A stretch of 64,000 bases of DNA from Auanema rhodensis (GCA_964057225.1 OZ059900.1:21266001-21330000); one strand, 5' to 3'. Shown: positions 11,601-49,270, numbered from the stretch's first letter. Notes: a model not told the origin generated them from the sequence alone. Translations and numbers: made by a program.

Positions 11601-12900
11601 ATTAGCCATAAGGGGCGTGCCCGCGTGCCCTCAGAATATGCTAATTTCCTAAATTTTCTAACCCCTGTTTTTTTGTCGTGAAAGTGGAACTAGACGTTGT
11701 ACGAACAATTTTGAGCTAGGTTTCATTGACATTGCATGAGTTTGAACACATGAAATCGTAAGTCAAAACCTTGTTTACAGCGAAAATTCCAAAAACTGGT
11801 TTTCCAGCATAATAAAATATTTCTCATGGGAAATACTGTGTTTTTGTATTTTTCTAGTGTTCAGCATGTAAAATGCTTCATTTTAGTATGTAACACGCTG
11901 AAATTCGTTGCATTTGACTACTCATATGAACAAAAATCGATTTAATCAATATTAGCCATAAGGGGCGTGCCCTCAGAATATGCTAATTTCCTTAATTTTC
12001 TAACCCCTGTTTTTTTGTTGTGAAAGTGGAACTAGACGTTGTACAAACAATTTTGAGCTAGGTTTCATTGACATTGCATGAGTTTGAACACATGGAATCG
12101 TAAGTCAAAACCTTGTTTACAGCGAAATTTCCAAAAACTGGTTTTCCAGCATAATAAAATATTTCTCATGGGAAATACTGTGTTTTTGTATTTTTCTAGT
12201 GTTCAGCATGTAAAATGCTTCATTTTAGTATGTAACACGCTGAAATTCGTTGCATTTGACTACTCATATGAACAAAAATCGATTTAATCAATATTAGCCA
12301 TAAGGGGCGTGCCCTCAGAATATGCTAATTTCCTTAATTTTCTAACCCCTGTTTTTTTGTCGTGAAAGTGGAACTAGACGTTGTACGAACAATTTTGAGC
12401 TAGGTTTCATTGACATTGCATGAGTTTGAACACATGAAATCGTAAGTCAAAACCTTGTTTACAGCGAAAATTCCAAAAACTGGTTTTCCAGCATAATAAA
12501 ATATTTCTCATGGGAAATACTGTGTTTTTGTATTTTTCTAGTGTTCAGCATGTAAAATACTTCATTTTAGTATGTAACACGCTGAAATTCGTTGCATTTG
12601 ACGACTCATATGAACAAAAATCGATTTAATCAATATTAGCCATAAGGGGCGTGCCCTCAGAATATGCTAATTTCCTAAATTTTCTAACCCCTGTTTTTTT
12701 GTCGTGAAAGTGGAACTAGACGTTGTACGAACAATTTTGAGCTAGGTTTCATTGACATTGCATGAGTTTGAACACATGAAATCGTAAGTCAAAACCTTGT
12801 TTACAGCGAAATTTCCAAAAACTGGTTTTCCAGCATAATAAAATATTTCTCATGGGAAATACTGTGTTTTTGTATTTTTCTAGTGTTCAGCATGTAAAAT
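5700..12900 (+). repeat. 10-monomer (3428-bp) tandem block duplication; boundaries approximate
   Basis: The 8-bp insertion (8187/11615), the TGA>TGG variant (ORFs 8650/12078) and the TAGTTTG variant all recur at offset 3428 = 10x342+8. Confidence 0.9.
8187..8202 (+). repeat. 8-bp tandem duplication GCGTGCCC x2 (second copy at 11615-11630)
   Basis: GGG-GCGTGCCC-GCGTGCCC-TCAG versus consensus GGG-GCGTGCCC-TCAG. Confidence 0.95.
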
Positions 12901-18900: not shown

Positions 18901-21900
18901 GGTTTCATTGACATTGCATGAGTTTGAACACATGAAATCGTAAGTCAAAACCTTGTTTACAGCGAAATTTCCAAAAACTGGTTTTCCAGCATAATAAAAT
19001 ATTTCTCATGGGAAATACTGTGTTTTTGTATTTTTCTAGTGTTCAGCATGTAAAATACTTCATTTTAGTATGTAACACGCTGAAATTCGTTGCATTTGAC
19101 GACTCATATGAACAAAAATCGATTTAATCAATATTAGCCATAAGGGGCGTGCCCTCAGAATATGCTAATTTCCTTAATTTTCTAACCCCTGTTTTTTTGT
19201 CGTGAAAGTGGAACTAGACGTTGTACGAACAATTTTGAGCTAGGTTTCATTGACATTGCATGAGTTTGAACACATGAAATCGTAAGTCAAAACCTTGTTT
19301 ACAGCGAAAATTCCAAAAACTGGTTTTCCAGCATAATAAAATATTTCTCATGGGAAATACTGTGTTTTTGTATTTTTCTAGTGTTCAGCATGTAAAATGC
19401 TTCATTTTAGTATGTAACACGCTGAAATTCGTTGCATTTGACTACTCATATGAACAAAAATCGATTTAATCAATATTAGCCATAAGGGGCGTGCCCTCAG
19501 AATATGCTAATTTCCTTAATTTTCTAACCCCTGTTTTTTTGTCGTGAAAGTGGAACTAGACGTTGTACAAACAATTTTGAGCTAGGTTTCATTGACATTG
19601 CATGAGTTTGAACACATGAAATCGTAAGTCAAAACCTTGTTTACAGCGAAATTTCCAAAAACTGGTTTTCCAGCATAATAAAATATTTCTCATGAGAAAT
19701 ACTGTGTTTTTGTATTTTTCTAGTGTTCAGCATGTAAAATGCTTAATTTTAGTATGTAACACGATGAAATTCGTTGCATTTGACGACTCATATGAACAAA
19801 AATCGATTTAATCAATATTAGCCATAAGGGGCGTGCCCTCAGAATATGCTAATTTCATTAATTTTCTAACCCCTGTTTTTTTGTCGTGAAAGTGGAACTA
19901 GACGTTGTACAAACAATTTTGAGCTAGGTTTCATTGACATTGCATGAGTTTGAACACATGGAATCGTAAGTCAAAACCTTGTTTACAGCGAAATTTCCAA
20001 AAACTGGTTTTCCAGCATAATAAAATATTTCTCATGGGAAATACTGTGTTTTTGTATTTTTCTAGTGTTCAGCATGTAAAATACTTCATTTTAGTATGTA
20101 ACACGCTGAAATTCGTTGCATTTGACGACTCATATGAACAAAAATCGATTTAATCAATATTAGCCATAAGGGGCGTGCCCTCAGAATATGCTAATTTCCT
20201 TAATTTTCTAACCCCTGTTTTTTTGTCGTGAAAGTGGAACTAGACGTTGTACGAACAATTTTGAGCTAGGTTTCATTGACATTGCATGAGTTTGAACACA
20301 TGAAATCGTAAGTCAAAACCTTGTTTACAGCGAAAATTCCAAAAACTGGTTTTCCAGCATAATAAAATATTTCTCATGGGAAATACTGTGTTTTTGTATT
20401 TTTCTAGTGTTCAGCATGTAAAATACTTCATTTTAGTATGTAACACGCTGAAATTCGTTGCATTTGACGACTCATATGAACAAAAATCGATTTAATCAAT
20501 ATTAGCCATAAGGGGCGTGCCCTCAGAATATGCTAATTTCCTAAATTTTCTAACCCCTGTTTTTTTGTCGTGAAAGTGGAACTAGACGTTGTACGAACAA
20601 TTTTGAGCTAGGTTTCATTGACATTGCATGAGTTTGAACACATGAAATCGTAAGTCAAAACCTTGTTTACAGCGAAATTTCCAAAAACTGGTTTTCCAGC
20701 ATAATAAAATATTTCTCATGGGAAATACTGTGTTTTTGTATTTTTCTAGTGTTCAGCATGTAAAATGCTTCATTTTAGTATGTAACACGCTGAAATTCGT
20801 TGCATTTGACGACTCATATGAACAAAAATCGATTTAATCAATATTAGCCATAAGGGGCGTGCCCTCAGAATATGCTAATTTCCTTAATTTTCTAACCCCT
20901 GTTTTTTTGTCGTGAAAGTGGAACTAGACGTTGTACGAACAATTTTGAGCTAGGTTTCATTGACATTGCATGAGTTTGAACACATGAAATCGTAAGTCAA
21001 AACCTTGTTTACAGCGAAATTTCCAAAAACTGGTTTTCCAGCATAATAAAATATTTCTCATGGGAAATACTGTGTTTTTGTATTTTTCTAGTGTTCAGCA
21101 TGTAAAATGCTTCATTTTAGTATGTAACACGCTGAAATTCGTTGCATTTGACGACTCATATGAACAAAAATCGATTTAATCAATATTAGCCATAAGGGGC
21201 GTGCCCTCAGAATATGCTAATTTCCTTAATTTTCTAACCCCTGTTTTTTTGTCGTGAAAGTGGAACTAGACGTTGTACGAACAATTTTGAGCTAGGTTTC
21301 ATTGACATTGCATGAGTTTGAACACATGAAATCGTAAGTCAAAACCTTGTTTACAGCGAAAATTCCAAAAACTGGTTTTCCAGCATAATAAAATATTTCT
21401 CATGGGAAATACTGTGTTTTTGTATTTTTCTAGTGTTCAGCATGTAAAATGCTTCATTTTAGTATGTAACACGCTGAAATTCGTTGCATTTGACTACTCA
21501 TATGAACAAAAATCGATTTAATCAATATTAGCCATAAGGGGCGTGCCCTCAGAATATGCTAATTTCCTTAATTTTCTAACCCCTGTTTTTTTGTCGTGAA
21601 AGTGGAACTAGACGTTGTACAAACAATTTTGAGCTAGGTTTCATTGACATTGCATGAGTTTGAACACATGAAATCGTAAGTCAAAACCTTGTTTACAGCG
21701 AAATTTCCAAAAACTGGTTTTCCAGCATAATAAAATATTTCTCATGAGAAATACTGTGTTTTTGTATTTTTCTAGTGTTCAGCATGTAAAATGCTTAATT
21801 TTAGTATGTAACACGATGAAATTCGTTGCATTTGACGACTCATATGAACAAAAATCGATTTAATCAATATTAGCCATAAGGGGCGTGCCCTCAGAATATG

Positions 21901-22672
21901 CTAATTTCCTTAATTTTCTAACCCCTGTTTTTTTGTCGTGAAAGTGGAACTAGACGTTGTACGAACAATTTTGAGCTAGGTTTCATTGACATTGCATGAG
22001 TTTGAACACATGAAATCGTAAGTCAAAACCTTGTTTACAGCGAAAATTCCAAAAACTGGTTTTCCAGCATAATAAAATATTTCTCATGGGAAATACTGTG
22101 TTTTTGTATTTTTCTAGTGTTCAGCATGTAAGATACTTCATTTTAGTATGTAACACGCTGAAATTTGTTGCATTTGACGACTCATATGAACAAAAATCGA
22201 TTTAATCAATATTAGCCATAAGGGGCGTGCCCTCAGAATATGCTAATTTCCTAAATTTTCTAACCCCTGTTTTTTTGTCGTGAAAGTGGAACTAGACGTT
22301 GTACGAACAATTTTGAGCTAGGTTTCATTGACATTGCATGAGTTTGAACACATGAAATCGTAAGTCAAAACCTTGTTTACAGCGAAAATTCCAAAAACTG
22401 GTTTTCCAGCATAATAAAATATTTCTCATGGGAAATACTGTGTTTTTGTATTTTTCTAGTGTTCAGCATGTAAAATGGTTCATTTAAGTATGTAACACGC
22501 TGAAATTCGTTGCATTTGACTACTCATATGAACAAAAATCGATTTAATCAATATTAGCCATAAGGGGCGTGCCCTCAGAATATGCTAATTTCCTTAATTT
22601 TCTAACCCTTGTTTTTTTGTCGTGAAAGTGGAACTAGACGTTGTACAAACAATTTTGAGCTAGGTTTCATTG

Positions 22673-22703
22673 TGTGACATATGAACAAAAATCGATTTCA
22701 ATG
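22673..22703. other. Primary fold-back (inversion) junction of the array
   Basis: ...GGTTTCATTG|TGTGA|CATATGAACAAAAATCGATTT (monomer 280-300, forward)|CAATG|TGAGTCGTCAAATG... (reverse complement from monomer position 281 downward). Confidence 0.95.
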
Positions 22704-25700
22704 TGAGTCGTCAAATGCAACGAATTTCAGCGTGTTACATACTAAAATGAAGCATTTTACATGCTGAACACTAGAAAAATACAAAAACACAGTATTTCTC
22801 ATGAGAATTATTTTATTATGCTGGAAAACCAGTTTTTGGAAATTTCGCTGTAAACAAGGTTTTGACTTACGATTTCATGTGTTCAAACTCATGCAATGTC
22901 AATGAAACCTAGCTCAAAATTGTTCGTACAACGTCTAGTTCCACTTTCACGACAAAAAAACAGGGGTTAGAAAATTAAGGAAATTAGCATATTCTGAGGG
23001 CACGCCCCTTATGGCTAATATTGATTAAATCGATTTTTGTTCATATGAGTCGTCAAATGCAACGAATTTCAGCGTGTTACATACTAAAATGAAGCATTTT
23101 ACATGCTGAACACTAGAAAAATACAAAAACACAGTATTTCCCATGAGAAATATTTTATTATGCTGGAAAACCAGTTTTTGGAAATTTCGCTGTAAACAAG
23201 GTTTTGACTTACGATTTCATGTGTTCAAACTCATGCAATGTCAATGAAACCTAGCTCAAAATTGTTCGTACAACGTCTAGTTCCACTTTCACGACAAAAA
23301 AACAGGGGTTAGAAAATTAAGGAAATTAGCATATTCTGAGGGCACGCCCCTTATGGCTAATATTGATTAAATCGATTTTTGTTCATATGAGTCGTCAAAT
23401 GCGACGAATTTCAGCGTGTTACATACTAAAATGAAGCATTTCACATGCTGAACACTAGAAAAATACAAAAACACAGTATTTTCCATGAGAAATATTTTAT
23501 TATGCTGGAAAACCAGTTTTTGGAAATTTCGCTGTAAACAAGGTTTTGACTTACGATTTCATGTGTTCAAACTCATGCAATGTCAATGAAACCTAGCTCA
23601 AAATTGTTCGTACAACGTCTAGTTCCACTTTCACGACAAAAAAACAGGGGTTAGAAAATTAAGGAAATTAGCATATTCTGAGGGCACGCCCCTTATGGCT
23701 AATATTGATTAAATCGATTTTTGTTCATATGAGTCGTCAAATGCAACGAATTTCAGCGTGTTACATACTAAAATGAAGCATTTTACATGCTGAACACTAG
23801 AAAAATACAAAAACACAGTATTTCCCATGAGAAATATTTTATTATGCTGGAAAACCAGTTTTTGGAAATTTCGCTGTAAACAAGGTTTTGACTTATGATT
23901 TCATGTGTTAAAACTCATGCAATGTCAATGAAACCTGGCTCAAAATTGTTCGTACAACGTCTAGTTCCACTTTCACGACAAAAAAACAGGGGTTAGAAAA
24001 TTAAGGAAATTAGCATATTCTGAGGGCACGCCCCTTATGGCTAATATTGATTAAATCGATTTTTGTTCATATGAGTCGTCAAATGCAACGAATTTTAGCG
24101 TGTTACATACTAAAATGAAGCATTTTACATGCTGAACACTAGAAAAATACAAAAACACAGTATTTCCCATGAGAAATATTTTATTATGCTGGAAAACCAG
24201 TTTTTGGAAATTTCGCTGTAAACAAGGTTTTGACTTATGATTTCATGTGTTAAAACTCATGCAATGTCAATGAAACCTAGCTCAAAATTGTTCGTACAAC
24301 GTCCAGTTCCACTTTCACGACAAAAAACAGGGGTTAGAAAATTAAGGAAATTAGCATATTCTGAGGGCACGCCACTTATGGCTAATATTGATTAAATCGA
24401 TTTTTGTTCATATGAGTCGTCAAATGCAACGAATTTCAGCGTGTTACAAACTAAAATGAAGCATTTTACATGCTGAACACTAGAAAAATACAAAAACACA
24501 GTATTTCCCATGAGAAATATTTTATTATGCTGGAAAACCAGTTTTTGGAAATTTCGCTGTAAACAATGTTTTGACTTACGATTTCATGTGTTCAAACTCA
24601 TGCAATGTCAATGAAACCTGGCTCAAAATTGTTCGTACAACGTCTAGTTCCACTTTCACGACAAAAAAACAGGGGTTAGAAAATTAAGGAAATTAGCATA
24701 TTCTGAGGGCACGCCCCTTATGGCTAATATTGATTAAATCGATTTTTGTTCATATGAGTCGTCAAATGCAACGAATTTCAGCGTGTTACATACTAAAATG
24801 AATCATTTTACATGCTGAACACTAGAAAAATACAAAAACACAGTATTTCCCATGAGAAATATTTTATTATGCTGGAAAACCAGTTTTTGGAAATTTCGCT
24901 GTAAACAAGGTTTTGACTTACGATTTCATGTGTTCAAACTCATGCAATGTCAATGAAACCTAGCTGAAAATTGTTCGTACAACGTCTAGTTCCACTTTCA
25001 CGACAAAAAAACAGGGGTTAGAAAATTAAGGAAATTAGCATATTCTGAGGGCACGCCCCTTATGGCTAATATTGATTAAATCGATTTTTGTTCATATGAG
25101 TCGTCAAATTCAACGAATTTCAGCGTGTTACATACTAAAATGGATCATTTTACATGCTGAACACTAGAAAAATACAAAAACACAGTATTTCCCATGAGAA
25201 ATATTTTATTATGCTGGAAAACCAGTTTTTCGAAATTTCGCTGTAAACAAGGTTTTGACTTACGATTTCATGTGTTCAAACTCATGCAATGTCAATGAAA
25301 CCTAGTTCAAAATTGTTCGTACAACGTCTAGTTCCACTTTCACGACAAAAAAACAGGGGTTAGAAAATTAAGGAAATTAGCATATTCTGAGGGCACGCCC
25401 CTTATGGCTAATATTGATTAAATCGATTTTTGTTCATATGAGTCGTCAAATGCAACGAATTTCAGCGTGTTACATACTAAAATGAAGCATTTTACATGCT
25501 GAATACTTGAAAAATACAAAAACACAGTATTTCCCATGAGAAATATTTTATTATGCTGGAAAACCAGTTTTTGGAAATTTCGCTGTAAACAAGGTTTTGA
25601 CTTACGATTTCATGTGTTCAAACTCATGCAATGTCAATGAAACCTAGCTCAAAATTGTTCGTACAACGTCTAGTTCCACTTTCACGACAAAAAAACAGGG

Positions 25701-28700
25701 GTTAGAAAATTAAGGAAATTAGCATATTCTGAGGGCACGCCCCTTATGGCTAATATTGATTAAATCGATTTTTGTTCATATGAGTCGTCAAATGCAACGA
25801 ATTTCAGCGTGTTACATACTGAAATGAAGCATTTTACATGCTGAACACTAGAAAAATACAAAAACACAGTATTTCTCATGAGAAATATTTTATTATGCTG
25901 GAAAACCAGTTTTTGGAAATTTCGCTGTAAACAAGGTTTTGACTTACGATTTCATGTGTTCAAACTCATGCAATGTCAATGAAACCTAGCTCAAAATTGT
26001 TCGTACAACGTCTAGTTCCACTTTCACGACAAAAAAACAGGGGTTAGAAAATTAAGGAAATTAGCATATTCTGAGGGCACGCCCCTTATGGCTAATATTG
26101 ATTAAATCGATTTTTGTTCATATGAGTCGTCAAATGCAACGAATTTCAGCGTGTTACATACTAAAATGAAGCATTTTACATGCTGAACACTAGAAAAATA
26201 CAAAAACACAGTATTTCCCATGAGAAATATTTTATTATGCTGGAAAACCAGTTTTTGGAAATTTCGCTGTAAACAATGTTTTGACTTACGATTTCATGTG
26301 TTCAAACTCATGCAATGTCAATGAAACCTGGCTCAAAATTGTTCGTACAACGTCTAGTTCCACTTTCACGACAAAAAAACAGGGGTTAGAAAATTAAGGA
26401 AATTAGCATATTCTGAGGGCACGCCCCTTATGGCTAATATTGATTAAATCGATTTTTGTTCATATGAGTCGTCAAATGCAACGAATTTCAGCGTGTTACA
26501 TACTAAAATGAATCATTTTACATGCTGAACACTAGAAAAATACAAAAACACAGTATTTCCCATGAGAAATATTTTATTATGCTGGAAAACCAGTTTTTGG
26601 AAATTTCGCTGTAAACAAGGTTTTGACTTACGATTTCATGTGTTCAAACTCATGCAATGTCAATGAAACCTAGCTCAAAATTGTTTGTACAACGTCTAGT
26701 TCCACTTTCACGACAAAAAAACAAGGGTTAGAAAATTAAGGAAATTAGCATATTCTGAGGGCACGCCCCTTATGGCTAATATTGATTAAATCGATTTTTG
26801 TTCATATGAGTAGTCAAATGCAACGAATTTCAGCGTGTTACATACTAAAATGAACCATTTTACATGCTGAACACTAGAAAAATACAAAAACACAGTATTT
26901 CCCATGAGAAATATTTTATTATGCTGGAAAACCAGTTTTTGGAATTTTCGCTGTAAACAAGGTTTTGACTTACGATTTCATGTGTTCAAACTCATGCAAT
27001 GTCAATGAAACCTAGCTCAAAATTGTTCGTACAACGTCTAGTTCCACTTTCACGACAAAAAAACAGGGGTTAGAAAATTTAGGAAATTAGCATATTCTGA
27101 GGGCACGCCCCTTATGGCTAATATTGATTAAATCGATTTTTGTTCATATGAGTCGTCAAATGCAACGAATTTCAGCGTGTTACATACTAAAATGAAGCAT
27201 TTTACATGCTGAACACTAGAAAAATACAAAAACACAGTATTTCCCATGAGAAATATTTTATTATGCTGGAAAACCAGTTTTTGGAAATTTCGCTGTAAAC
27301 AAGGTTTTGACTTACGATTTCATGTGTTCAAACTCATGCAATGTCAATGAAACCTGGCTCAAAATTGTTCGTACAACGTCTAGTTCCACTTTCACGACAA
27401 AAAAACAGGGGTTAGAAAATTAAGGAAATTAGCATATTCTGAGGGCACGCCCCTTATGGCTAATATTGATTAAATCGATTTTTGTTCATATGAGTCGTCA
27501 AATGCAACGAATTTCAGCGTGTTACATACTAAAATGAATCATTTTACATGCTGAACACTAGAAAAATACAAAAACACAGTATTTCTCATGAGAAATATTT
27601 TATTATGCTGGAAAACCAGTTTTTGGAAATTTCGCTGTAAACAAGGTTTTGACTTACGATTTCATGTGTTCAAACTCATGCAATGTCAATGAAACCTAGC
27701 TCAAAATTGTTCGTACAACGTCTAGTTCCACTTTCACGACAAAAAAACAGGGGTTAGAAAATTAAGGAAATTAGCATATTCTGAGGGCACGCCCCTTATG
27801 GCTAATATTGATTAAATCGATTTTTGTTCATATGAGTCGTCAAATGCAACGAATTTCAGCGTGTTACATACTAAAATGAAGCATTTTACATGCTGAACAC
27901 TAGAAAAATACAAAAACACAGTATTTCCCATGAGAAATATTTTATTATGCTGGAAAACCAGTTTTTGGAAATTTCGCTGTAAACAATGTTTTGACTTACG
28001 ATTTCATGTGTTCAAACTCATGCAATGTCAATGAAACCTGGCTCAAAATTGTTCGTACAACGTCTAGTTCCACTTTCACGACAAAAAAACAGGGGTTAGA
28101 AAATTAAGGAAATTAGCATATTCTGAGGGCACGCCCCTTATGGCTAATATTGATTAAATCGATTTTTGTTCATATGAGTCGTCAAATGCAACGAATTTCA
28201 GCGTGTTACATACTAAAATGAATCATTTTACATGCTGAACACTAGAAAAATACAAAAACACAGTATTTCCCATGAGAAATATTTTATTATGCTGGAAAAC
28301 CAGTTTTTGGAAATTTCGCTGTAAACAAGGTTTTGACTTACGATTTCATGTGTTCAAACTCATGCAATGTCAATGAAACCTAGCTCAAAATTGTTTGTAC
28401 AACGTCTAGTTCCACTTTCACGACAAAAAAACAAGGGTTAGAAAATTAAGGAAATTAGCATATTCTGAGGGCACGCCCCTTATGGCTAATATTGATTAAA
28501 TCGATTTTTGTTCATATGAGTAGTCAAATGCAACGAATTTCAGCGTGTTACATACTAAAATGAACCATTTTACATGCTGAACACTAGAAAAATACAAAAA
28601 CACAGTATTTCCCATGAGAAATATTTTATTATGCTGGAAAACCAGTTTTTGGAATTTTCGCTGTAAACAAGGTTTTGACTTACGATTTCATGTGTTCAAA

Positions 28701-29829
28701 CTCATGCAATGTCAATGAAACCTAGCTCAAAATTGTTCGTACAACGTCTAGTTCCACTTTCACGACAAAAAAACAGGGGTTAGAAAATTTAGGAAATTAG
28801 CATATTCTGAGGGCACGCCCCTTATGGCTAATATTGATTAAATCGATTTTTGTTCATATGAGTCGTCAAATGCAACGAATTTCAGCGTGTTACATACTAA
28901 AATGAAGCATTTTACATGCTGAACACTAGAAAAATACAAAAACACAGTATTTCCCATGAGAAATATTTTATTATGCTGGAAAACCAGTTTTTGGAAATTT
29001 CGCTGTAAACAAGGTTTTGACTTACGATTTCATGTGTTCAAACTCATGCAATGTCAATGAAACCTAGCTCAAAATTGTTCCTACAACGTCTAGTTCCACT
29101 TTCACGACAAAAAAACAGGGGTTAGAAAATTAATGAAATTAGCATATTCTGAGGGCACGCCCCTTATGGCTAATATTGATTAAATCGATTTTTGTTCATA
29201 TGAGTCGTCAAATGCAACGAATTTCATCGTGTTACATACTAAAATTAAGCATTTTACATGCTGAACACTAGAAAAATACAAAAACACAGTATTTCTCATG
29301 AGAAATATTTTATTATGCTGGAAAACCAGTTTTTGGAAATTTCGCTGTAAACAAGGTTTTGACTTACGATTTCATGTGTTCAAACTCATGCAATGTCAAT
29401 GAAACCTAGCTCAAAATTGTTTGTACAACGTCTAGTTCCACTTTCACGACAAAAAAACAGGGGTTAGAAAATTAAGGAAATTAGCATATTCTGAGGGCAC
29501 GCCCCTTATGGCTAATATTGATTAAATCGATTTTTGTTCATATGAGTAGTCAAATGCAACGAATTTCAGCGTGTTACATACTAAAATGAAGCATTTTACA
29601 TGCTGAACACTAGAAAAATACAAAAACACAGTATTTCCCATGAGAAATATTTTATTATGCTGGAAAACCAGTTTTTGGAATTTTCGCTGTAAACAAGGTT
29701 TTGACTTACGATTTCATGTGTTCAAACTCATGCAATGTCAATGAAACCTAGCTCAAAATTGTTCGTACAACGTCTAGTTCCACTTTCACGACAAAAAAAC
29801 AGGGGTTAGAAAATTAAGGAAATTAGCAT
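22704..29829 (-). repeat. Reverse satellite block (~21 monomers): right-type variants grading into inverted left-type monomers
   Basis: Reverse-complement monomers with 342-bp period. Right-type variants (GCGACG, TTATGA, CCTGG, AATGTT, GAATC) run to ~26600; left-type markers (TTTGTAC, CAAGGG, GAGTAG, GAACC, ATTTAGG) appear from ~26685. Confidence 0.95.
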
Positions 29830-30273
29830 TTTTCTAGTGTTCAGCATGTAAAATGCTTCATTTTAGTATGTAACACGCTGAAATTCGTTGCATTTGACGA
29901 CTCATATGAACAAAAATCGATTTAATCAATATTAGCCATAAGGGGCGTGCCCTCAGAATATGCTAATTTCCTTAATTTTCTAACCCCTGTTTTTTTGTCG
30001 TGAAAGTGGAACTAGACGTTGTACGAACAATTTTGAGCTAGGTTTCATTGACATTGCATGAGTTTGAACACATGAAATCGTAAGTCAAAACCTTGTTTAC
30101 AGCGAAATTTCCAAAAACTGGTTTTCCAGCATAATAAAATAATTCTCATGAGAAATACTGTGTTTTTGTATTTTTCTAGTGTTCAGCATGTAAAATGCTT
30201 CATTTTAGTATGTAACACGCTGAAATTCGTTGCATTTGACGACTCACATTGAAATCGATTTTTGTTCATATGT
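29828..30273 (+). repeat. Forward island 1 (446 bp including junction-B cassette)
   Basis: Reverse complement of 22677-23122, including the AAATAATTCTC variant. Confidence 0.95.
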
Positions 30274-31896
30274 GTTACATACTAAAATGAAGCATTTTAC
30301 ATGCTGAACACTAGAAAAACACAAAAACACAGTATTTCTCATGAGAAATATTTTATTATGCTGGAAAACCAGTTTTTGGAAATTTCGCTGTAAACAAGGT
30401 TTTGACTTACGATTTCATGTGTTCAAACTCATGCAATGTCAATGAAACCTAGCTCAAAATTGTTTGTACAACGTCTAGTTCCACTTTCACGACAAAAAAA
30501 CAAGGGTTAGAAAATTAAGGAAATTAGCATATTCTGAGGGCACGCCCCTTATGGCTAATATTGATTAAATCGATTTTTGTTCATATGAGTAGTCAAATGC
30601 AACGAATTTCAGCGTGTTACATACTAAAATGAACCATTTTACATGCTGAACACTAGAAAAATACAAAAACACAGTATTTCCCATGAGAAATATTTTATTA
30701 TGCTGGAAAACCAGTTTTTGGAATTTTCGCTGTAAACAAGGTTTTGACTTACGATTTCATGTGTTCAAACTCATGCAATGTCAATGAAACCTAGCTCAAA
30801 ATTGTTCGTACAACGTCTAGTTCCACTTTCACGACAAAAAAACAGGGGTTAGAAAATTTAGGAAATTAGCATATTCTGAGGGCACGCCCCTTATGGCTAA
30901 TATTGATTAAATCGATTTTTGTTCATATGAGTCGTCAAATGCAACGAATTTCAGCGTGTTACATACTAAAATGAAGCATTTTACATGCTGAACACTAGAA
31001 AAATACAAAAACACAGTATTTCCCATGAGAAATATTTTATTATGCTGGAAAACCAGTTTTTGGAAATTTCGCTGTAAACAAGGTTTTGACTTACGATTTC
31101 ATGTGTTCAAACTCATGCAATGTCAATGAAACCTAGCTCAAAATTGTTCCTACAACGTCTAGTTCCACTTTCACGACAAAAAAACAGGGGTTAGAAAATT
31201 AATGAAATTAGCATATTCTGAGGGCACGCCCCTTATGGCTAATATTGATTAAATCGATTTTTGTTCATATGAGTCGTCAAATGCAACGAATTTCATCGTG
31301 TTACATACTAAAATTAAGCATTTTACATGCTGAACACTAGAAAAATACAAAAACACAGTATTTCTCATGAGAAATATTTTATTATGCTGGAAAACCAGTT
31401 TTTGGAAATTTCGCTGTAAACAAGGTTTTGACTTACGATTTCATGTGTTCAAACTCATGCAATGTCAATGAAACCTAGCTCAAAATTGTTTGTACAACGT
31501 CTAGTTCCACTTTCACGACAAAAAAACAGGGGTTAGAAAATTAAGGAAATTAGCATATTCTGAGGGCACGCCCCTTATGGCTAATATTGATTAAATCGAT
31601 TTTTGTTCATATGAGTAGTCAAATGCAACGAATTTCAGCGTGTTACATACTAAAATGAAGCATTTTACATGCTGAACACTAGAAAAATACAAAAACACAG
31701 TATTTCCCATGAGAAATATTTTATTATGCTGGAAAACCAGTTTTTGGAATTTTCGCTGTAAACAAGGTTTTGACTTACGATTTCATGTGTTCAAACTCAT
31801 GCAATGTCAATGAAACCTAGCTCAAAATTGTTCGTACAACGTCTAGTTCCACTTTCACGACAAAAAAACAGGGGTTAGAAAATTAAGGAAATTAGC

Positions 31897-32342
31897 ATTT
31901 TTCTAGTGTTCAGCATGTAAAATGCTTCATTTTAGTATGTAACACGCTGAAATTCGTTGCATTTGACGACTCATATGAACAAAAATCGATTTAATCAATA
32001 TTAGCCATAAGGGGCGTGCCCTCAGAATATGCTAATTTCCTTAATTTTCTAACCCCTGTTTTTTTGTCGTGAAAGTGGAACTAGACGTTGTACGAACAAT
32101 TTTGAGCTAGGTTTCATTGACATTGCATGAGTTTGAACACATGAAATCGTAAGTCAAAACCTTGTTTACAGCGAAATTTCCAAAAACTGGTTTTCCAGCA
32201 TAATAAAATAATTCTCATGAGAAATACTGTGTTTTTGTATTTTTCTAGTGTTCAGCATGTAAAATGCTTCATTTTAGTATGTAACACGCTGAAATTCGTT
32301 GCATTTGACGACTCACATTGAAATCGATTTTTGTTCATATGT
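31897..32342 (+). repeat. Forward island 2 (446 bp)
   Basis: Junction A at start; GACTCACATTGAAATCGATTTTTGTTCATATGT (junction B) at end. Confidence 0.95.
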
Positions 32343-33965
32343 GTTACATACTAAAATGAAGCATTTTACATGCTGAACACTAGAAAAATACAAAAACACA
32401 GTATTTCTCATGAGAAATATTTTATTATGCTGGAAAACCAGTTTTTGGAAATTTCGCTGTAAACAAGGTTTTGACTTACGATTTCATGTGTTCAAACTCA
32501 TGCAATGTCAATGAAACCTAGCTCAAAATTGTTTGTACAACGTCTAGTTCCACTTTCACGACAAAAAAACAAGGGTTAGAAAATTAAGGAAATTAGCATA
32601 TTCTGAGGGCACGCCCCTTATGGCTAATATTGATTAAATCGATTTTTGTTCATATGAGTAGTCAAATGCAACGAATTTCAGCGTGTTACATACTAAAATG
32701 AACCATTTTACATGCTGAACACTAGAAAATTACAAAAACACAGTATTTCCCATGAGAAATATTTTATTATGCTGGAAAACCAGTTTTTGGAATTTTCGCT
32801 GTAAACAAGGTTTTGACTTACGATTTCATGTGTTCAAACTCATGCAATGTCAATGAAACCTAGCTCAAAATTGTTCGTACAACGTCTAGTTCCACTTTCA
32901 CGACAAAAAAACAGGGGTTAGAAAATTTAGGAAATTAGCATATTCTGAGGGCACGCCCCTTATGGCTAATATTGATTAAATCGATTTTTGTTCATATGAG
33001 TCGTCAAATGCAACGAATTTCAGCGTGTTACATACTAAAATGAAGCATTTTACATGCTGAACACTAGAAAAATACAAAAACACAGTATTTCCCATGAGAA
33101 ATATTTTATTATGCTGGAAAACCAGTTTTTGGAAATTTCGCTGTAAACAAGGTTTTGACTTACGATTTCATGTGTTCAAACTCATGCAATGTCAATGAAA
33201 CCTAGCTCAAAATTGTTCCTACAACGTCTAGTTCCACTTTCACGACAAAAAAACAGGGGTTAGAAAATTAATGAAATTAGCATATTCTGAGGGCACGCCC
33301 CTTATGGCTAATATTGATTAAATCGATTTTTGTTCATATGAGTCGTCAAATGCAACGAATTTCATCGTGTTACATACTAAAATTAAGCATTTTACATGCT
33401 GAACACTAGAAAAATACAAAAACACAGTATTTCTCATGAGAAATATTTTATTATGCTGGAAAACCAGTTTTTGGAAATTTCGCTGTAAACAAGGTTTTGA
33501 CTTACGATTTCATGTGTTCAAACTCATGCAATGTCAATGAAACCTAGCTCAAAATTGTTTGTACAACGTCTAGTTCCACTTTCACGACAAAAAAACAGGG
33601 GTTAGAAAATTAAGGAAATTAGCATATTCTGAGGGCACGCCCCTTATGGCTAATATTGATTAAATCGATTTTTGTTCATATGAGTAGTCAAATGCAACGA
33701 ATTTCAGCGTGTTACATACTAAAATGAAGCATTTTACATGCTGAACACTAGAAAAATACAAAAACACAGTATTTCCCATGAGAAATATTTTATTATGCTG
33801 GAAAACCAGTTTTTGGAAATTTCGCTGTAAACAAGGTTTTGACTTACGATTTCATGTGTTCAAACTCATGCAATGTCAATGAAACCTAGCTCAAAATTGT
33901 TTGTACAACGTCTAGTTCCACTTTCACGACAAAAAAACAGGGGTTAGAAAATTAAGGAAATTAGC

Positions 33966-34069
33966 ATTTTTCTAGTGTTCAGCATGTAAAATGCTTCATT
34001 TTAGTATGTAACACGCTGAAATTCGTTGCATTTGACGACTCACATTGAAATCGATTTTTGTTCATATGT
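33966..34069 (+). repeat. Forward island 3 (104 bp)
   Basis: Same two junctions, one monomer shorter (446-342). Confidence 0.95.
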
Positions 34070-35692
34070 GTTACATACTAAAATGAAGCATTTTACATGC
34101 TGAACACTAGAAAAATACAAAAACACAGTATTTCTCATGAGAAATATTTTATTATGCTGGAAAACCAGTTTTTGGAAATTTCGCTGTAAACAAGGTTTTG
34201 ACTTACGATTTCATGTGTTCAAACTCATGCAATGTCAATGAAACCTAGCTCAAAATTGTTTCTACAACGTCTAGTTCCACTTTCACGACAAAAAAACAAG
34301 GGTTAGAAAATTAAGGAAATTAGCATATTCTGAGGGCACGCCCCTTATGGCTAATATTGATTAAATCGATTTTTGTTCATATGAGTAGTCAAATGCAACG
34401 AATTTCAGCGTGTTACATACTAAAATGAACCATTTTACATGCTGAACACTGGAAAAATACAAAAACACAGTATTTCCCATGAGAAATATTTTATTATGCT
34501 GGAAAACCAGTTTTTGGAATTTTCGCTGTAAACAAGGTTTTGACTTACGATTTCATGTGTTCAAACTCATGCAATGTCAATGAAACCTAGCTCAAAATTG
34601 TTCGTACAACGTCTAGTTCCACTTTCACGACAAAAAAACAGGGGTTAGAAAATTTAGGAAATTAGCATATTCTGAGGGCACGCCCCTTATGGCTAATATT
34701 GATTAAATCGATTTTTGTTCATATGAGTCGTCAAATGCAACGAATTTCAGCGTGTTACATACTAAAATGAAGCATTTTACATGCTGAACACTAGAAAAAT
34801 ACAAAAACACAGTATTTCCCATGAGAAATATTTTATTATGCTGGAAAACCAGTTTTTGGAAATTTCGCTGTAAACAAGGTTTTGACTTACGATTTCATGT
34901 GTTCAAACTCATGCAATGTCAATGAAACCTAGCTCAAAATTGTTCCTACAACGTCTAGTTCCACTTTCACGACAAAAAAACAGGGGTTAGAAAATTAATG
35001 AAATTAGCATATTCTGAGGGCACGCCCCTTATGGCTAATATTGATTAAATCGATTTTTGTTCATATGAGTCGTCAAATGCAACGAATTTCATCGTGTTAC
35101 ATACTAAAATTAAGCATTTTACATGCTGAACACTAGAAAAATACAAAAACACAGTATTTCTCATGAGAAATATTTTATTATGCTGGAAAACCAGTTTTTG
35201 GAAATTTCGCTGTAAACAAGGTTTTGACTTACGATTTCATGTGTTCAAACTCATGCAATGTCAATGAAACCTAGCTCAAAATTGTTTGTACAACGTCTAG
35301 TTCAACTTTCACGACAAAAAAACAGGGGTTAGAAAATTAAGGAAATTAGCATATTCTGAGGGCACGCCCCTTATGGCTAATATTGATTAAATCGATTTTT
35401 GTTCATATGAGTAGTCAAATGCAACGAATTTCAGCGTGTTACATACTAAAATGAAGCATTTTACATGCTGAACACTAGAAAAATACAAAAACACAGTATT
35501 TCCCATGAGAAATATTTTATTATGCTGGAAAACCAGTTTTTGGAATTTTCGCTGTAAACAAGGTTTTGACTTACGATTTCATGTGTTCAAACTCATGCAA
35601 TGTCAATGAAACCTAGCTCAAAATTGTTCGTACAACGTCTAGTTCCACTTTCACGACAAAAAAACAGGGGTTAGAAAATTAAGGAAATTATC

Positions 35693-36138
35693 ATTTTTCT
35701 AGTGTTCAGCATGTAAAATGCTTCATTTTAGTATGTAACACGCTGAAATTCGTTGCATTTGACGACTCATATGAACAAAAATCGATTTAATCAATATTAG
35801 CCATAAGGGGCGTGCCCTCAGAATATGCTAATTTCCTTAATTTTCTAACCCCTGTTTTTTTGTCGTGAAAGTGGAACTAGACGTTGTACGAACAATTTTG
35901 AGCTAGGTTTCATTGACATTGCATGAGTTTGAACACATGAAATCGTAAGTCAAAACCTTGTTTACAGCGAAATTTCCAAAAACTGGTTTTCCAGCATAAT
36001 AAAATAATTCTCATGAGAAATACTGTGTTTTTGTATTTTTCTAGTGTTCAGCATGTAAAATGCTTCATTTTAGTATGTAACACGCTGAAATTCGTTGCAT
36101 TTGACGACTCACATTGAAATCGATTTTTGTTCATATGT
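35693..36138 (+). repeat. Forward island 4 (446 bp)
   Basis: Same junctions; private G>T just upstream (ATTATCAT). Confidence 0.95.
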
Positions 36139-38103
36139 GTTACATACTAAAATGAAGCATTTTACATGCTGAACACTAGAAAAATACAAAAACACAGTAT
36201 TTCTCATGAGAAATATTTTATTATGCTGGAAAACCAGTTTTTGGAAATTTCGCTGTAAACAAGGTTTTGACTTACGATTTCATGTGTTCAAACTCATGCA
36301 ATGTCAATGAAACCTAGCTCAAAATTGTTTCTACAACGTCTAGTTCCACTTTCACGACAAAAAAACAAGGGTTAGAAAATTAAGGAAATTAGCATATTCT
36401 GAGGGCACGCCCCTTATGGCTAATATTGATTAAATCGATTTTTGTTCATATGAGTAGTCAAATGCAACGAATTTCAGCGTGTTACATACTAAAATGAACC
36501 ATTTTACATGCTGAACACTGGAAAAATACAAAAACACAGTATTTCCCATGAGAAATATTTTATTATGCTGGAAAACCAGTTTTTGGAATTTTCGCTGTAA
36601 ACAAGGTTTTGACTTACGATTTCATGTGTTCAAACTCATGCAATGTCAATGAAACCTAGCTCAAAATTGTTCGTACAACGTCTAGTTCCACTTTCACGAC
36701 AAAAAAACAGGGGTTAGAAAATTAAGGAAATTAGCATATTCTGAGGGCACGCCCCTTATGGCTAATATTGATTAAATCGATTTTTGTTCATATGAGTAGT
36801 CAAATGCAACGAATTTCAGCGTGTTACATACTAAAATGAACCATTTTACATGCTGAACACTAGAAAAATACAAAAACACAGTATTTCCCATGAGAAATAT
36901 TTTATTATGCTGGAAAACCAGTTTTTGGAATTTTCGCTGTAAACAAGGTTTTGACTTACGATTTCATGTGTTCAAACTCATGCAATGTCAATGAAACCTA
37001 GCTCAAAATTGTTCGTACAACGTCTAGTTCCACTTTCACGACAAAAAAACAGGGGTTAGAAAATTTAGGAAATTAGCATATTCTGAGGGCACGCCCCTTA
37101 TGGCTAATATTGATTAAATCGATTTTTGTTCATATGAGTCGTCAAATGCAACGAATTTCAGCGTGTTACATACTAAAATGAAGCATTTTACATGCTGAAC
37201 ACTAGAAAAATACAAAAACACAGTATTTCCCATGAGAAATATTTTATTATGCTGGAAAACCAGTTTTTGGAAATTTCGCTGTAAACAAGGTTTTGACTTA
37301 CGATTTCATGTGTTCAAACTCATGCAATGTCAATGAAACCTAGCTCAAAATTGTTCCTACAACGTCTAGTTCCACTTTCACGACAAAAAAACAGGGGTTA
37401 GAAAATTAATGAAATTAGCATATTCTGAGGGCACGCCCCTTATGGCTAATATTGATTAAATCGATTTTTGTTCATATGAGTCGTCAAATGCAACGAATTT
37501 CATCGTGTTACATACTAAAATTAAGCATTTTACATGCTGAACACTAGAAAAATACAAAAACACAGTATTTCTCATGAGAAATATTTTATTATGCTGGAAA
37601 ACCAGTTTTTGGAAATTTCGCTGTAAACAAGGTTTTGACTTACGATTTCATGTGTTCAAACTCATGCAATGTCAATGAAACCTAGCTCAAAATTGTTTGT
37701 ACAACGTCTAGTTCAACTTTCACGACAAAAAAACAGGGGTTAGAAAATTAAGGAAATTAGCATATTCTGAGGGCACGCCCCTTATGGCTAATATTGATTA
37801 AATCGATTTTTGTTCATATGAGTAGTCAAATGCAACGAATTTCAGCGTGTTACATACTAAAATGAAGCATTTTACATGCTGAACACTAGAAAAATACAAA
37901 AACACAGTATTTCCCATGAGAAATATTTTATTATGCTGGAAAACCAGTTTTTGGAATTTTCGCTGTAAACAAGGTTTTGACTTACGATTTCATGTGTTCA
38001 AACTCATGCAATGTCAATGAAACCTAGCTCAAAATTGTTCGTACAACGTCTAGTTCCACTTTCACGACAAAAAAACAGGGGTTAGAAAATTAAGGAAATT
38101 AGC

Positions 38104-38891
38104 ATTTTTCTAGTGTTCAGCATGTAAAATGCTTCATTTTAGTATGTAACACGCTGAAATTCGTTGCATTTGACGACTCATATGAACAAAAATCGATTTA
38201 ATCAATATTAGCCATAAGGGGCGTGCCCTCAGAATATGCTAATTTCCTTAATTTTCTAACCCCTGTTTTTTTGTCGTGAAAGTGGAACTAGACGTTGTAC
38301 GAACAATTTTGAGCTAGGTTTCATTGACATTGCATGAGTTTGAACACATGAAATCGTAAGTCAAAACCTTGTTTACAGCGAAATTTCCAAAAACTGGTTT
38401 TCCAGCATAATAAAATAATTCTCATGAGAAATACTGTGTTTTTGTATTTTTCTAGTGTTCAGCATGTAAAATGCTTCATTTTAGTATGTAACACGCTGAA
38501 ATTCGTTGCATTTGACGACTCATATGAACAAAAATCGATTTAATCAATATTAGCCATAAGGGGCGTGCCCTCAGAATATGCTAATTTCCTTAATTTTCTA
38601 ACCCCTGTTTTTTTGTCGTGAAAGTGGAACTAGACGTTGTACGAACAATTTTGAGCTAGGTTTCATTGACATTGCATGAGTTTGAACACATGAAATCGTA
38701 AGTCAAAACCTTGTTTACAGCGAAATTTCCAAAAACTGGTTTTCCAGCATAATAAAATAATTCTCATGAGAAATACTGTGTTTTTGTATTTTTCTAGTGT
38801 TCAGCATGTAAAATGCTTCATTTTAGTATGTAACACGCTGAAATTCGTTGCATTTGACGACTCACATTGAAATCGATTTTTGTTCATATGT
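38104..38891 (+). repeat. Forward island 5 (788 bp)
   Basis: Same junctions, one monomer longer (446+342); AAATAATTCTC variant present twice. Confidence 0.95.
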
Positions 38892-39146
38892 GTTACATAC
38901 TAAAATGAAGCATTTTACATGCTGAACACTAGAAAAATACAAAAACACAGTATTTCTCATGAGAAATATTTTATTATGCTGGAAAACCAGTTTTTGGAAT
39001 TTTCGCTGTAAACAAGGTTTTGACTTACGATTTCATGTGTTCAAACTCATGCAATGTCAATGAAACCTAGCTCAAAATTGTTCGTACAACGTCTAGTTCC
39101 ACTTTCACGACAAAAAAACAGGGGTTAGAAAATTAAGGAAATTAGC

Positions 39147-39250
39147 ATTTTTCTAGTGTTCAGCATGTAAAATGCTTCATTTTAGTATGTAACACGCTGA
39201 AATTCGTTGCATTTGACGACTCACATTGAAATCGATTTTTGTTCATATGT
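39147..39250 (+). repeat. Forward island 6 (104 bp)
   Basis: Junctions A and B. Confidence 0.95.
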
Positions 39251-40873
39251 GTTACATACTAAAATGAAGCATTTTACATGCTGAACACTAGAAAAATACA
39301 AAAACACAGTATTTCTCATGAGAAATATTTTATTATGCTGGAAAACCAGTTTTTGGAAATTTCGCTGTAAACAAGGTTTTGACTTACGATTTCATGTGTT
39401 CAAACTCATGCAATGTCAATGAAACCTAGCTCAAAATTGTTTGTACAACGTCTAGTTCCACTTTCACGACAAAAAAACAAGGGTTAGAAAATTAAGGAAA
39501 TTAGCATATTCTGAGGGCACGCCCCTTATGGCTAATATTGATTAAATCGATTTTTGTTCATATGAGTAGTCAAATGCAACGAATTTCAGCGTGTTACATA
39601 CTAAAATGAACCATTTTACATGCTGAACACTAGAAAAATACAAAAACACAGTATTTCCCATGAGAAATATTTTATTATGCTGGAAAACCAGTTTTTGGAA
39701 TTTTCGCTGTAAACAAGGTTTTGACTTACGATTTCATGTGTTCAAACTCATGCAATGTCAATGAAACCTAGCTCAAAATTGTTCGTACAACGTCTAGTTC
39801 CACTTTCACGACAAAAAAACAGGGGTTAGAAAATTTAGGAAATTAGCATATTCTGAGGGCACGCCCCTTATGGCTAATATTGATTAAATCGATTTTTGTT
39901 CATATGAGTCGTCAAATGCAACGAATTTCAGCGTGTTACATACTAAAATGAAGCATTTTACATGCTGAACACTAGAAAAATACAAAAACACAGTATTTCC
40001 CATGAGAAATATTTTATTATGCTGGAAAACCAGTTTTTGGAAATTTCGCTGTAAACAAGGTTTTGACTTACGATTTCATGTGTTCAAACTCATGCAATGT
40101 CAATGAAACCTAGCTCAAAATTGTTCCTACAACGTCTAGTTCCACTTTCACGACAAAAAAACAGGGGTTAGAAAATTAATGAAATTAGCATATTCTGAGG
40201 GCACGCCCCTTATGGCTAATATTGATTAAATCGATTTTTGTTCATATGAGTCGTCAAATGCAACGAATTTCATCGTGTTACATACTAAAATTAAGCATTT
40301 TACATGCTGAACACTAGAAAAATACAAAAACACAGTATTTCTCATGAGAAATATTTTATTATGCTGGAAAACCAGTTTTTGGAAATTTCGCTGTAAACAA
40401 GGTTTTGACTTACGATTTCATGTGTTCAAACTCATGCAATGTCAATGAAACCTAGCTCAAAATTGTTTGTACAACGTCTAGTTCCACTTTCACGACAAAA
40501 AAACAGGGGTTAGAAAATTAAGGAAATTAGCATATTCTGAGGGCACGCCCCTTATGGCTAATATTGATTAAATCGATTTTTGTTCATATGAGTAGTCAAA
40601 TGCAACGAATTTCAGCGTGTTACATACTAAAATGAAGCATTTTACATGCTGAACACTAGAAAAATACAAAAACACAGTATTTCCCATGAGAAATATTTTA
40701 TTATGCTGGAAAACCAGTTTTTGGAATTTTCGCTGTAAACAAGGTTTTGACTTACGATTTCATGTGTTCAAACTCATGCAATGTCAATGAAACCTAGCTC
40801 AAAATTGTTCGTACAACGTCTAGTTCCACTTTCACGACAAAAAAACAGGGGTTAGAAAATTAAGGAAATTAGC

Positions 40874-41319
40874 ATTTTTCTAGTGTTCAGCATGTAAAAT
40901 GCTTCATTTTAGTATGTAACACGCTGAAATTCGTTGCATTTGACGACTCATATGAACAAAAATCGATTTAATCAATATTAGCCATAAGGGGCGTGCCCTC
41001 AGAATATGCTAATTTCCTTAATTTTCTAACCCCTGTTTTTTTGTCGTGAAAGTGGAACTAGACGTTGTACGAACAATTTTGAGCTAGGTTTCATTGACAT
41101 TGCATGAGTTTGAACACATGAAATCGTAAGTCAAAACCTTGTTTACAGCGAAATTTCCAAAAACTGGTTTTCCAGCATAATAAAATAATTCTCATGAGAA
41201 ATACTGTGTTTTTGTATTTTTCTAGTGTTCAGCATGTAAAATGCTTCATTTTAGTATGTAACACGCTGAAATTCGTTGCATTTGACGACTCACATTGAAA
41301 TCGATTTTTGTTCATATGT
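40874..41319 (+). repeat. Forward island 7 (446 bp)
   Basis: Junctions A and B. Confidence 0.95.
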
Positions 41320-41574
41320 GTTACATACTAAAATGAAGCATTTTACATGCTGAACACTAGAAAAATACAAAAACACAGTATTTCTCATGAGAAATATTTT
41401 ATTATGCTGGAAAACCAGTTTTTGGAATTTTCGCTGTAAACAAGGTTTTGACTTACGATTTCATGTGTTCAAACTCATGCAATGTCAATGAAACCTAGCT
41501 CAAAATTGTTCGTACAACGTCTAGTTCCACTTTCACGACAAAAAAACAGGGGTTAGAAAATTAAGGAAATTAGC

Positions 41575-41678
41575 ATTTTTCTAGTGTTCAGCATGTAAAA
41601 TGCTTCATTTTAGTATGTAACACGCTGAAATTCGTTGCATTTGACGACTCACATTGAAATCGATTTTTGTTCATATGT
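41575..41678 (+). repeat. Forward island 8 (104 bp)
   Basis: Junctions A and B. Confidence 0.95.
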
Positions 41679-43301: not shown

Positions 43302-43405
43302 ATTTTTCTAGTGTTCAGCATGTAAAATGCTTCATTTTAGTATGTAACACGCTGAAATTCGTTGCATTTGACGACTCACATTGAAATCGATTTTTGTTCA
43401 TATGT
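43302..43405 (+). repeat. Forward island 9 (104 bp)
   Basis: Junctions A and B. Confidence 0.95.
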
Positions 43406-45028: not shown

Positions 45029-45132
45029 ATTTTTCTAGTGTTCAGCATGTAAAATGCTTCATTTTAGTATGTAACACGCTGAAATTCGTTGCATTTGACG
45101 ACTCACATTGAAATCGATTTTTGTTCATATGT
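45029..45132 (+). repeat. Forward island 10 (104 bp)
   Basis: Junctions A and B. Confidence 0.95.
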
Positions 45133-46755: not shown

Positions 46756-47201
46756 ATTTTTCTAGTGTTCAGCATGTAAAATGCTTCATTTTAGTATGTA
46801 ACACGCTGAAATTCGTTGCATTTGACGACTCATATGAACAAAAATCGATTTAATCAATATTAGCCATAAGGGGCGTGCCCTCAGAATATGCTAATTTCCT
46901 TAATTTTCTAACCCCTGTTTTTTTGTCGTGAAAGTGGAACTAGACGTTGTACGAACAATTTTGAGCTAGGTTTCATTGACATTGCATGAGTTTGAACACA
47001 TGAAATCGTAAGTCAAAACCTTGTTTACAGCGAAATTTCCAAAAACTGGTTTTCCAGCATAATAAAATAATTCTCATGAGAAATACTGTGTTTTTGTATT
47101 TTTCTAGTGTTCAGCATGTAAAATGCTTCATTTTAGTATGTAACACGCTGAAATTCGTTGCATTTGACGACTCACATTGAAATCGATTTTTGTTCATATG
47201 T
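46756..47201 (+). repeat. Forward island 11 (446 bp)
   Basis: Junctions A and B. Confidence 0.95.
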
Positions 47202-48824: not shown

Positions 48825-49270
48825 ATTTTTCTAGTGTTCAGCATGTAAAATGCTTCATTTTAGTATGTAACACGCTGAAATTCGTTGCATTTGACGACTC
48901 ATATGAACAAAAATCGATTTAATCAATATTAGCCATAAGGGGCGTGCCCTCAGAATATGCTAATTTCCTTAATTTTCTAACCCCTGTTTTTTTGTCGTGA
49001 AAGTGGAACTAGACGTTGTACGAACAATTTTGAGCTAGGTTTCATTGACATTGCATGAGTTTGAACACATGAAATCGTAAGTCAAAACCTTGTTTACAGC
49101 GAAATTTCCAAAAACTGGTTTTCCAGCATAATAAAATAATTCTCATGAGAAATACTGTGTTTTTGTATTTTTCTAGTGTTCAGCATGTAAAATGCTTCAT
49201 TTTAGTATGTAACACGCTGAAATTCGTTGCATTTGACGACTCACATTGAAATCGATTTTTGTTCTTATGT
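48825..49270 (+). repeat. Forward island 12 (446 bp)
   Basis: Junctions A and B; private CATATG>CTTATG change in junction B. Confidence 0.95.

Follow-up and report, generated by a model that had tools for sequence, protein, structure and literature searches.

A strand-switch joint of a 342-bp satellite recurs within a higher-order repeat in Auanema rhodensis

Layout of the satellite and its strand switches

The window considered here is a 64-kb stretch (64,000 nucleotides) of Auanema rhodensis DNA (GCA_964057225.1, OZ059900.1:21266001-21330000, positions being counted from its first nucleotide), which consists throughout of one AT-rich satellite (33.5% GC) with a monomer of 342 bp. The monomers run forward from 1 to 22672 and in reverse from 22689 to 64000, the reverse run being broken by 12 short forward islands between 29828 and 49270. 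These islands belong to a higher-order repeat (HOR), and each one contains the same turn between orientations as the main switch at the end of the forward block. As detailed below, sequence comparison indicates that the 13 turns are copies of a single ancestral joint. For this description, monomers have been cut against a reference monomer (window 20863-21204) and every distinct sequence has been given a type number; F and R stand for forward and reverse, bracketed numbers as in F[1-100] are monomer positions, and p marks a partial monomer.

The locus is plain satellite DNA, since the satellite contains no open reading frame of at least 80 amino acids and an Rfam search of 20800-24000 gave no hits at E<=1. 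A retrozyme-like, ribozyme or structured-RNA tandem repeat was ruled out on the same two grounds. The satellite is very abundant, because its summed word depth reaches 0.3-2 million for 22500-23250 in four runs (three studies, two organisms), and it is common to related samples. Literature searches for '342 bp' satellites and for six monomer 19-21-mers returned nothing relevant; the satellites listed in a paper on Caenorhabditis DNA elimination have other lengths, none of them being 342 bp.

The left block (1-22672) is made of 66 forward 342-bp monomers, as seen both by monomer decomposition and by Tandem Repeats Finder (period 342, 98% matches), and shows its own multi-monomer patterns and left-type (L-type) alleles. 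It ends with F[1-100] at 22573-22672. The main switch then continues with a TGTG filler (22673-22676), one A, F[295-315], R[315-1] and more reverse monomers. The filler belongs to a joint specific to this main breakpoint, which connects monomer position 100 to the segment shared with the HOR and whose 16-nt junction word is unique in the window. The turn itself is centred on the monomer's own 10-bp palindrome AAATCGATTT (22689-22698), whose 10 bp make up the whole overlap between the forward and the reverse alignment. This palindrome is found once per monomer in nearly all monomers, with 187 copies in the window. It is followed in the reverse arm by CAATG (22699-22703), in place of 9 bp. Read forward, as in the islands (22686-22712 and each island), the CAATG lesion makes the arm read CACATTGAAATCG, a sequence one base off CACATGAAATCG (monomer positions ~117-129), from which, about 175 bp upstream, the 'filler' may have been templated as a patch.

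The HOR array (29828-49270) contains 12 units, starting at 29828, 31897, 33966, 35693, 38104, 39147, 40874, 41575, 43302, 45029, 46756 and 48825. In the window orientation, each unit opens with junction A, followed by F[220-342], F[1-315] with the lesion, the palindrome turn and R[315-295]; a 26-bp deletion joint then leads to R[268-1], three full reverse monomers and R[342-12]. Junction A, whose first of 12 copies lies at 29826-29829, connects R position ~11 to F position ~221 through an AT microhomology (2 bp). It is the head-to-tail, non-homologous joint of the unit, exact in 11 copies and variant in one. An apparent '9T>A variant' beside it was discarded as an alignment overlap at the joint, with no substitution. 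At the deletion joint (first copy at 30262-30273, minus strand), R[305-295] is followed by the loss of positions 269-294, with 1-2 bp of microhomology; the last of its 12 copies carries one substitution. Both joints are found 12 times each and nowhere else in the window.

The first island (29828-30273, plus strand) runs through F[220-342] and the lesion-bearing F[1-315] to the turn. Its 446-bp form is found in six islands; another (38104-38890) is longer by one monomer, and the remaining five are short forms of 104 bp, with one monomer fewer. The left-type reverse arm of unit 1 (30273-31896, minus strand) reads 49p[268-1], 43, 2, 1, 11[342-12]. The first of these left-type reverse arms (43, 2, 1, 11[12-342]; 28471-29832, minus strand) already stands ahead of the first island and is identical to later HOR arms over 1,456 bp.

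As in satellite HORs, the unit is a tandem multi-monomer one, with periods between 701 and 2411 bp, namely 2069, 2069, 1727, 2411, 1043, 1727, 701, 1727, 1727, 1727 and 2069 in order, all of them equal to 359+342n. The arms of different units differ from each other at 0-8 positions per 1,624 bp, as compared to 10-23 or more in other registers. The variants 74G, 58T and 227C are shared by the adjacent units 3 and 4, and the pair of a short arm 59p with a short island is observed in units 5-6 and again in units 7-8. Because the lengths follow 359+342n and derived variants are common to neighbours, the array appears to result from repeated local unequal exchange and not from a single burst. At its right edge (49269-53639, minus strand), a mosaic partial monomer 62p and monomer 63 precede a distal block. 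This last arm (62p, 63) mixes HOR-type and native alleles, which marks the edge of the HOR. In the last island, the turn (49259-49268) has moreover one substitution relative to the eleven others, CTTATG replacing CATATG.

A joint shared between the main switch and the repeat

The 446-bp segment of the main switch (22677-23122, plus strand) goes from F[295-315] across the turn to R[315-1], which carries the CAATG lesion, and on to R[342-220]. The preliminary description had equated it with the reverse complement of the island 29828-30273, and the correspondence is indeed exact (446/446, 0 mismatches), with an ungapped identity falling to about 28% directly outside both ends. Five other full islands likewise match at 446/446, and the last island has one mismatch. 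The CAATG filler beside the palindrome, also mentioned there, is confined in the window to the main switch and the 12 islands: the 24-nt motif combining the palindrome and CAATG is found 13 times, once on the plus strand (22689) and 12 times on the minus strand, in the islands, where the chance expectation is none. The same is true of AAATAATTCTC, described as confined to ~22807 and the islands, which was located once on the minus strand at 22803 and eight times on the plus strand, every time within islands.

Since 13 of 13 motifs are identical over 24 nt when none is expected by chance, all turn joints are copies of one ancestral joint; the comparison likewise indicates that junction A arose once. 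The resemblance extends to rare variants on either side of the turn. On one side, the main switch and the HOR have 37T, 75A and 248G in common. On the other side, they share the CAATG lesion, 192A, 201A and 123 bp of the next monomer. Within the left block, CCCTTG (37C>T) and ATGGTTC (248C>G) had been assigned to the last two monomers only, and they were indeed found there once each, at 22604 and 22474; further copies lie in R orientation upstream of the first island, at 26719/26849 and 28429/28559.

The two versions of the joint differ by what they have lost. The main joint lacks monomer positions 101-294 and the HOR only 269-294, so that about 168-192 bp present in all HOR copies are missing from the main breakpoint. 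Because it is more deleted than every HOR copy, the present-day main breakpoint cannot, from this comparison, have been the template of the HOR. Its joint can be parsed in two ways. It may be nested in the 26-bp deletion, F100 being then followed by TGTG, by the A of position 268 and by F295, which needs one event, or be an independent 192-bp deletion at a CAT microhomology with a 4-bp insertion, which needs two. It is thus likely but not proven that the HOR retains the older state, since both parses exist and the nested one requires fewer events.

The coincidence of the orientation switch with a short palindrome is a typical fold-back feature. The arms are no mirror images, however: the left-block end and the proximal right block (P1', 23000-28128) are 98.45% identical, which is the background level, and a simple fold-back of the present arms was rejected on this basis as the origin of the main turn. 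Around the island turns, 201A is the only variant common to both arms.

Left-type arms, inverted repeats and a possible flip

In the 2,069-bp unit, the turn separates 446 bp of right-type from 1,623 bp of left-type sequence. Read forward, its arm is 11[12-342], 1, 2, 43, 49p[1-268]. Types 1 and 2 are exact left-block monomers (type 1 at 328, 19495 and 21547; type 2 at 670, 2380 and 13339), and seven arm alleles (21A, 74G, 75A, 251A, 270A, 291T, 23A) are present in 5-21 of 64 left monomers and in none of 46 native reverse monomers. For these two reasons, the HOR reverse arm groups by sequence with the left block and not with the right block. A clustering of the HOR reverse monomers with right-block monomers, which would have contradicted the preliminary description, was looked for, and they cluster with the left block instead. 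The left-type trimer noticed at 1-1026 fits as well: the reverse-complemented HOR arm matches window 1-1033 without a difference over 1,033 bp.

The description of the unit as left monomers, breakpoint and right monomers is accordingly retained for its left-type arm, its turn and its right-type 446 bp, and not for a collinear relation to the main switch. The left block ends with 11, 1, 28, 29, 30p[1-100]. When the reverse-complemented unit is aligned to 20900-23130, type 1 matches exactly, type 11 is reproduced by 46p from position 12 onwards, types 29 and 43, which both have the rare 248G, are distinguished by a single site, and 30p is exactly 49p[1-100], with the rare 37T and 75A. The full monomers 28 and 2, however, differ at six sites, and the main joint lacks 101-294; the two sequences are not collinear. 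Given the left-block pattern '1 2 3 4', a '2' may have dropped out of the main copy and a '3' out of the HOR. Over the comparable 1,456 bp, the left-block end shows 7 differences from the arm. The window start (1-1452) also shows 7, and this tie led to reject the left-block end as the unique best match. The link between the arm and the left-block end would thus come from the rare markers, combined with a model of one monomer gained and one lost.

The last 1.3 left monomers (22231-22672, plus strand; types 29 and 30p[1-100], with the rare 248G, 37T and 75A) form the left arm of a 442-bp inverted-repeat pair, whose right arm is found in monomers 42' and 43' (28129-28812, minus strand). The identity to the reverse complement of 28371-28812 is 441/442, with one mismatch at 22486, and the same single mismatch is seen against the reverse complement of 26661-27102. 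Indeed, 27787-28812 is an exact 1,026-bp direct duplicate of 26077-27102 (monomers 41 42 43), 1,710 bp apart, so that 37T, 75A and 248G, the 'left-end' markers, are also present within the native right block.

These inverted repeats (441/442 and 446/446) bracket segments of 5.7-6.7 kb, as expected for an invertible segment. When 22673-28370 (5.7 kb) is inverted in silico, in-phase forward monomers extend from 1 to about 28358, and the 13 turn motifs then follow on one strand, with spacings of 1907, 2069, 1727, 2069 and so on. In this flip isomer, the tandem array is co-oriented and begins with the main breakpoint as its first unit. Since one flip between inverted monomers makes all turns co-oriented, one such homologous flip would be enough to account for the inverted-copy relation, and neither excision nor re-insertion would be required. 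The second perfect inverted-repeat pair (22677-23122 and each island) allows further isomers.

The native-type reverse monomers of P1' are specifically paralogous to the distal block at 49537-54666: the two are 99.26% identical over 5.1 kb, a value rising to 99.62% in the first 2.4 kb, as compared to at most about 98.95% in other registers. The differences per monomer are 4, 0, 0, 2, 0, 1, 2, 8, 1, 2, 2 and 3, and then reach background. Both blocks start one monomer after a turn, and their monomers 2-12 are in register. As assembled, they are direct repeats flanking the HOR; a mirror relation is seen only in a hypothetical flip isomer. In such an isomer they would mirror each other as the two arms of a palindrome with the last island at its centre; this would be a classic fold-back footprint and would make that island the primary joint. 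Monomers 42 and 49p can each be read as a recombinant of the other, so that the evidence of the window on the copying direction is symmetric.

Two further rearrangements are seen at some distance from these joints. In the left block, the same 8-bp insertion (a duplicated GCGTGCCC) is present at two monomer boundaries, 8193-8200 and 11621-11628, 3,428 bp apart, which marks a 10-monomer super-repeat (5 14 3 | 4 ...). At 60825-61209, one monomer is 385 bp long, with a 43-bp internal tandem duplication after monomer position 151.

Origin of the repeat and comparison with known systems

The explanation to which we lean, by a small margin over doubt, starts from joints of single origin, with the main and HOR joints as sister copies, and continues with stepwise unequal exchange and a homologous flip. 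The first unit would have been made by a microhomology-mediated duplication or a template switch across the fold-back joint. Its stepwise multiplication would then be due to homologous exchange between 342-bp monomers out of register. That the main breakpoint and the HOR are oppositely oriented would result from homologous recombination between inverted monomers, which flipped 22673-28370; in the unflipped form, the main breakpoint would be the first unit of a co-oriented tandem array, and the HOR copies would hold the fuller, probably older state. The region is probably kept unstable by a near-perfect hairpin of about 410 bp in each unit, as predicted for 29828-30700 (dG -462 kcal/mol, z -60). 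No local fold is predicted at the more deleted main joint (z -1), in keeping with a stabilising effect of deletions near a palindrome centre.

Several points weigh against this explanation. The joints are read from the assembly. In the flipped form, the last unit would still precede native right-type monomers instead of left-type ones, and the presence of left-type sequence in reverse orientation would still call for one inverted copying event. Nor would the explanation fully account for the 99.6% paralogy between P1' and the distal block, both starting one monomer after a turn. Monomers 42 and 49p, each a possible hybrid of the other, appear to leave the direction symmetric, and the second parse of the main joint, with its independent 192-bp deletion, leaves the greater age of the HOR likely but not proven.

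Template switching could also have made the inverted copy in place, without any flip: starting from a fork in the right block, synthesis would have jumped to the opposite strand close to an undeleted ancestor of the main breakpoint, proceeded for about 2 kb through its turn and returned at junction A, before amplification by unequal exchange. Such a course, possible though unlikely in our view, would fit the short microhomologies (of 2 bp in junction A and of 1-2 bp in the 26-bp deletion joint), the 4-bp filler at the main joint and the closeness of CACATTGAAATCG to CACATGAAATCG, located about 175 bp upstream in the monomer, a hint that the patch was templated. It would also fit the main breakpoint's long arms, each of which continues in its own block type. 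At either edge of the HOR array, however, the transition is homologous and in register instead of being a novel joint, and the exact copy of (41 42 43) at 26077-27102 and the P1'/distal paralogy would each need a separate explanation; on sequence alone, template switching and the flip are indistinguishable. The preliminary description had proposed that a ~2069-bp segment spanning the fold-back centre was excised or copied, joined end to end and amplified. The shared joint and the closure of the unit by junction A agree with this proposal, whereas the present main breakpoint is not the source and the evidence for direction is symmetric. One of the routes that it suggested was an extrachromosomal circular DNA (eccDNA): the 2,069-bp segment would have been excised as a circle, with junction A as circle joint, multiplied by rolling circle and re-inserted inverted in the right block. 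Junction A does join the unit head to tail as a circle joint would, and plant satellite circles in HOR-multiple sizes are documented, rolling-circle amplification with reintegration having been proposed (PMC2543021). Nothing in the window favours this route, which looks improbable. No sequence feature demands a circle, and the five unit lengths, the two island forms and the derived variants common to neighbours imply that most copies were made by local exchange, in place of the uniform units with star-like private variation of a rolling-circle array. The known circles arise by homologous recombination between direct repeats (PMC2543021), which cannot make an orientation-joining junction A, and the present main breakpoint lacks sequence that the HOR has. 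An existing chromosomal HOR would anyway shed circles with junction A.

An assembly artefact would attribute the main switch or the islands to chimeric or fold-back reads, or to a mis-join in near-identical satellite. At perfect 446-bp inverted repeats, assemblers can indeed take a wrong path or isomer, and independent read support for the single-copy main joint was not obtained: Logan contigs from four runs are only about 60 nt long on 22500-23250, with no listed piece spanning the joints, the turn depth is 0.3-1.5% of the flanking depth in these contigs, a value inseparable from edge effects, and a word search for the main joint listed no run, with only 2 words sampled. Such an artefact is nevertheless very improbable in view of the three distinct novel joints, each with consistent flanks, and of the quantised lengths and the private and shared variants of the 12 units, features that do not arise by mis-assembly. 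Of the words sampled from 29400-31000, 95% are moreover present in two other runs; twenty public runs contain such words, at up to 0.95 of those sampled. Another reading, speculative and clearly unlikely, would see the built-in 10-bp palindrome as a recurrent fold-back hotspot, with perfect inverted repeats of 0.4 kb letting kilobase blocks flip back and forth. If this were true, the satellite arrays of the genome would be mixtures of isomers, spawning new HORs around inversion joints, and the 410-bp hairpins could supply double-stranded RNA for satellite silencing or elimination.

Under the explanation by single-origin joints, unequal exchange and a flip, the locus would be a base-level record of a satellite array building a new HOR. 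A complex-looking structure of 27 kb could be reduced to three non-homologous events, namely the palindrome turn, one microhomology joint and one later deletion, the remainder being attributable to homologous exchange. An inversion breakpoint could thus itself become part of a repeat unit, and 'inverted copy' relations in satellites may stem from simple flips between oppositely oriented monomers. It is a clear, not an exceptional, case of satellite evolution; if the pattern recurs across the genome, it would provide a testable model of satellite turnover in a holocentric animal.

Rearrangements by template switching and inverted duplications of the fold-back type are known from fork stalling and template switching, microhomology-mediated break-induced replication (FoSTeS/MMBIR) and duplication-triplication/inversion-duplication (DUP-TRP/INV-DUP) structures. 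The window resembles them by its turn at a short palindrome, its 1-2-bp microhomologies, its small fillers and the inverted segment between direct copies. Unlike in these systems, the arms of the main turn are 98.45% identical with no mirror in their variants, and the structure was then tandemly amplified. Segments also flip between inverted repeats by homologous recombination, as in the plastid inverted-repeat isomers and in palindrome-flanked inversions. Here, two near-perfect inverted-repeat pairs (446/446 and 441/442) similarly bracket 5.7-6.7 kb, but the flip is deduced only from an in-silico inversion.

In primates, centromeric satellite arrays are known to contain inversions, of which some are polymorphic (PMC11062924). 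These inversions share with this locus the strand switches in a homogeneous array and blocks between oppositely oriented monomers, which may be polymorphic; the present breakpoint differs in being copied 13 times as part of a unit, at a scale of kilobases and not megabases, in a host that is not a primate. Satellite circles form by homologous recombination between direct repeats, in sizes that are multiples of the monomer or of the HOR (PMC2543021). The head-to-tail unit could likewise circularise, with circles sized according to the HOR; however, junction A joins opposite orientations and the units are heterogeneous.

Satellite HORs, such as those of primate alpha-satellite and of plants, are likewise tandem multi-monomer units that vary by whole-monomer steps through unequal exchange, and the units described here are 99.5-100% alike, as compared to 98.5-99.4% for monomers in other registers. 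What sets the present unit apart from them is its two orientation switches, its hairpin of about 410 bp and its one non-homologous joint.

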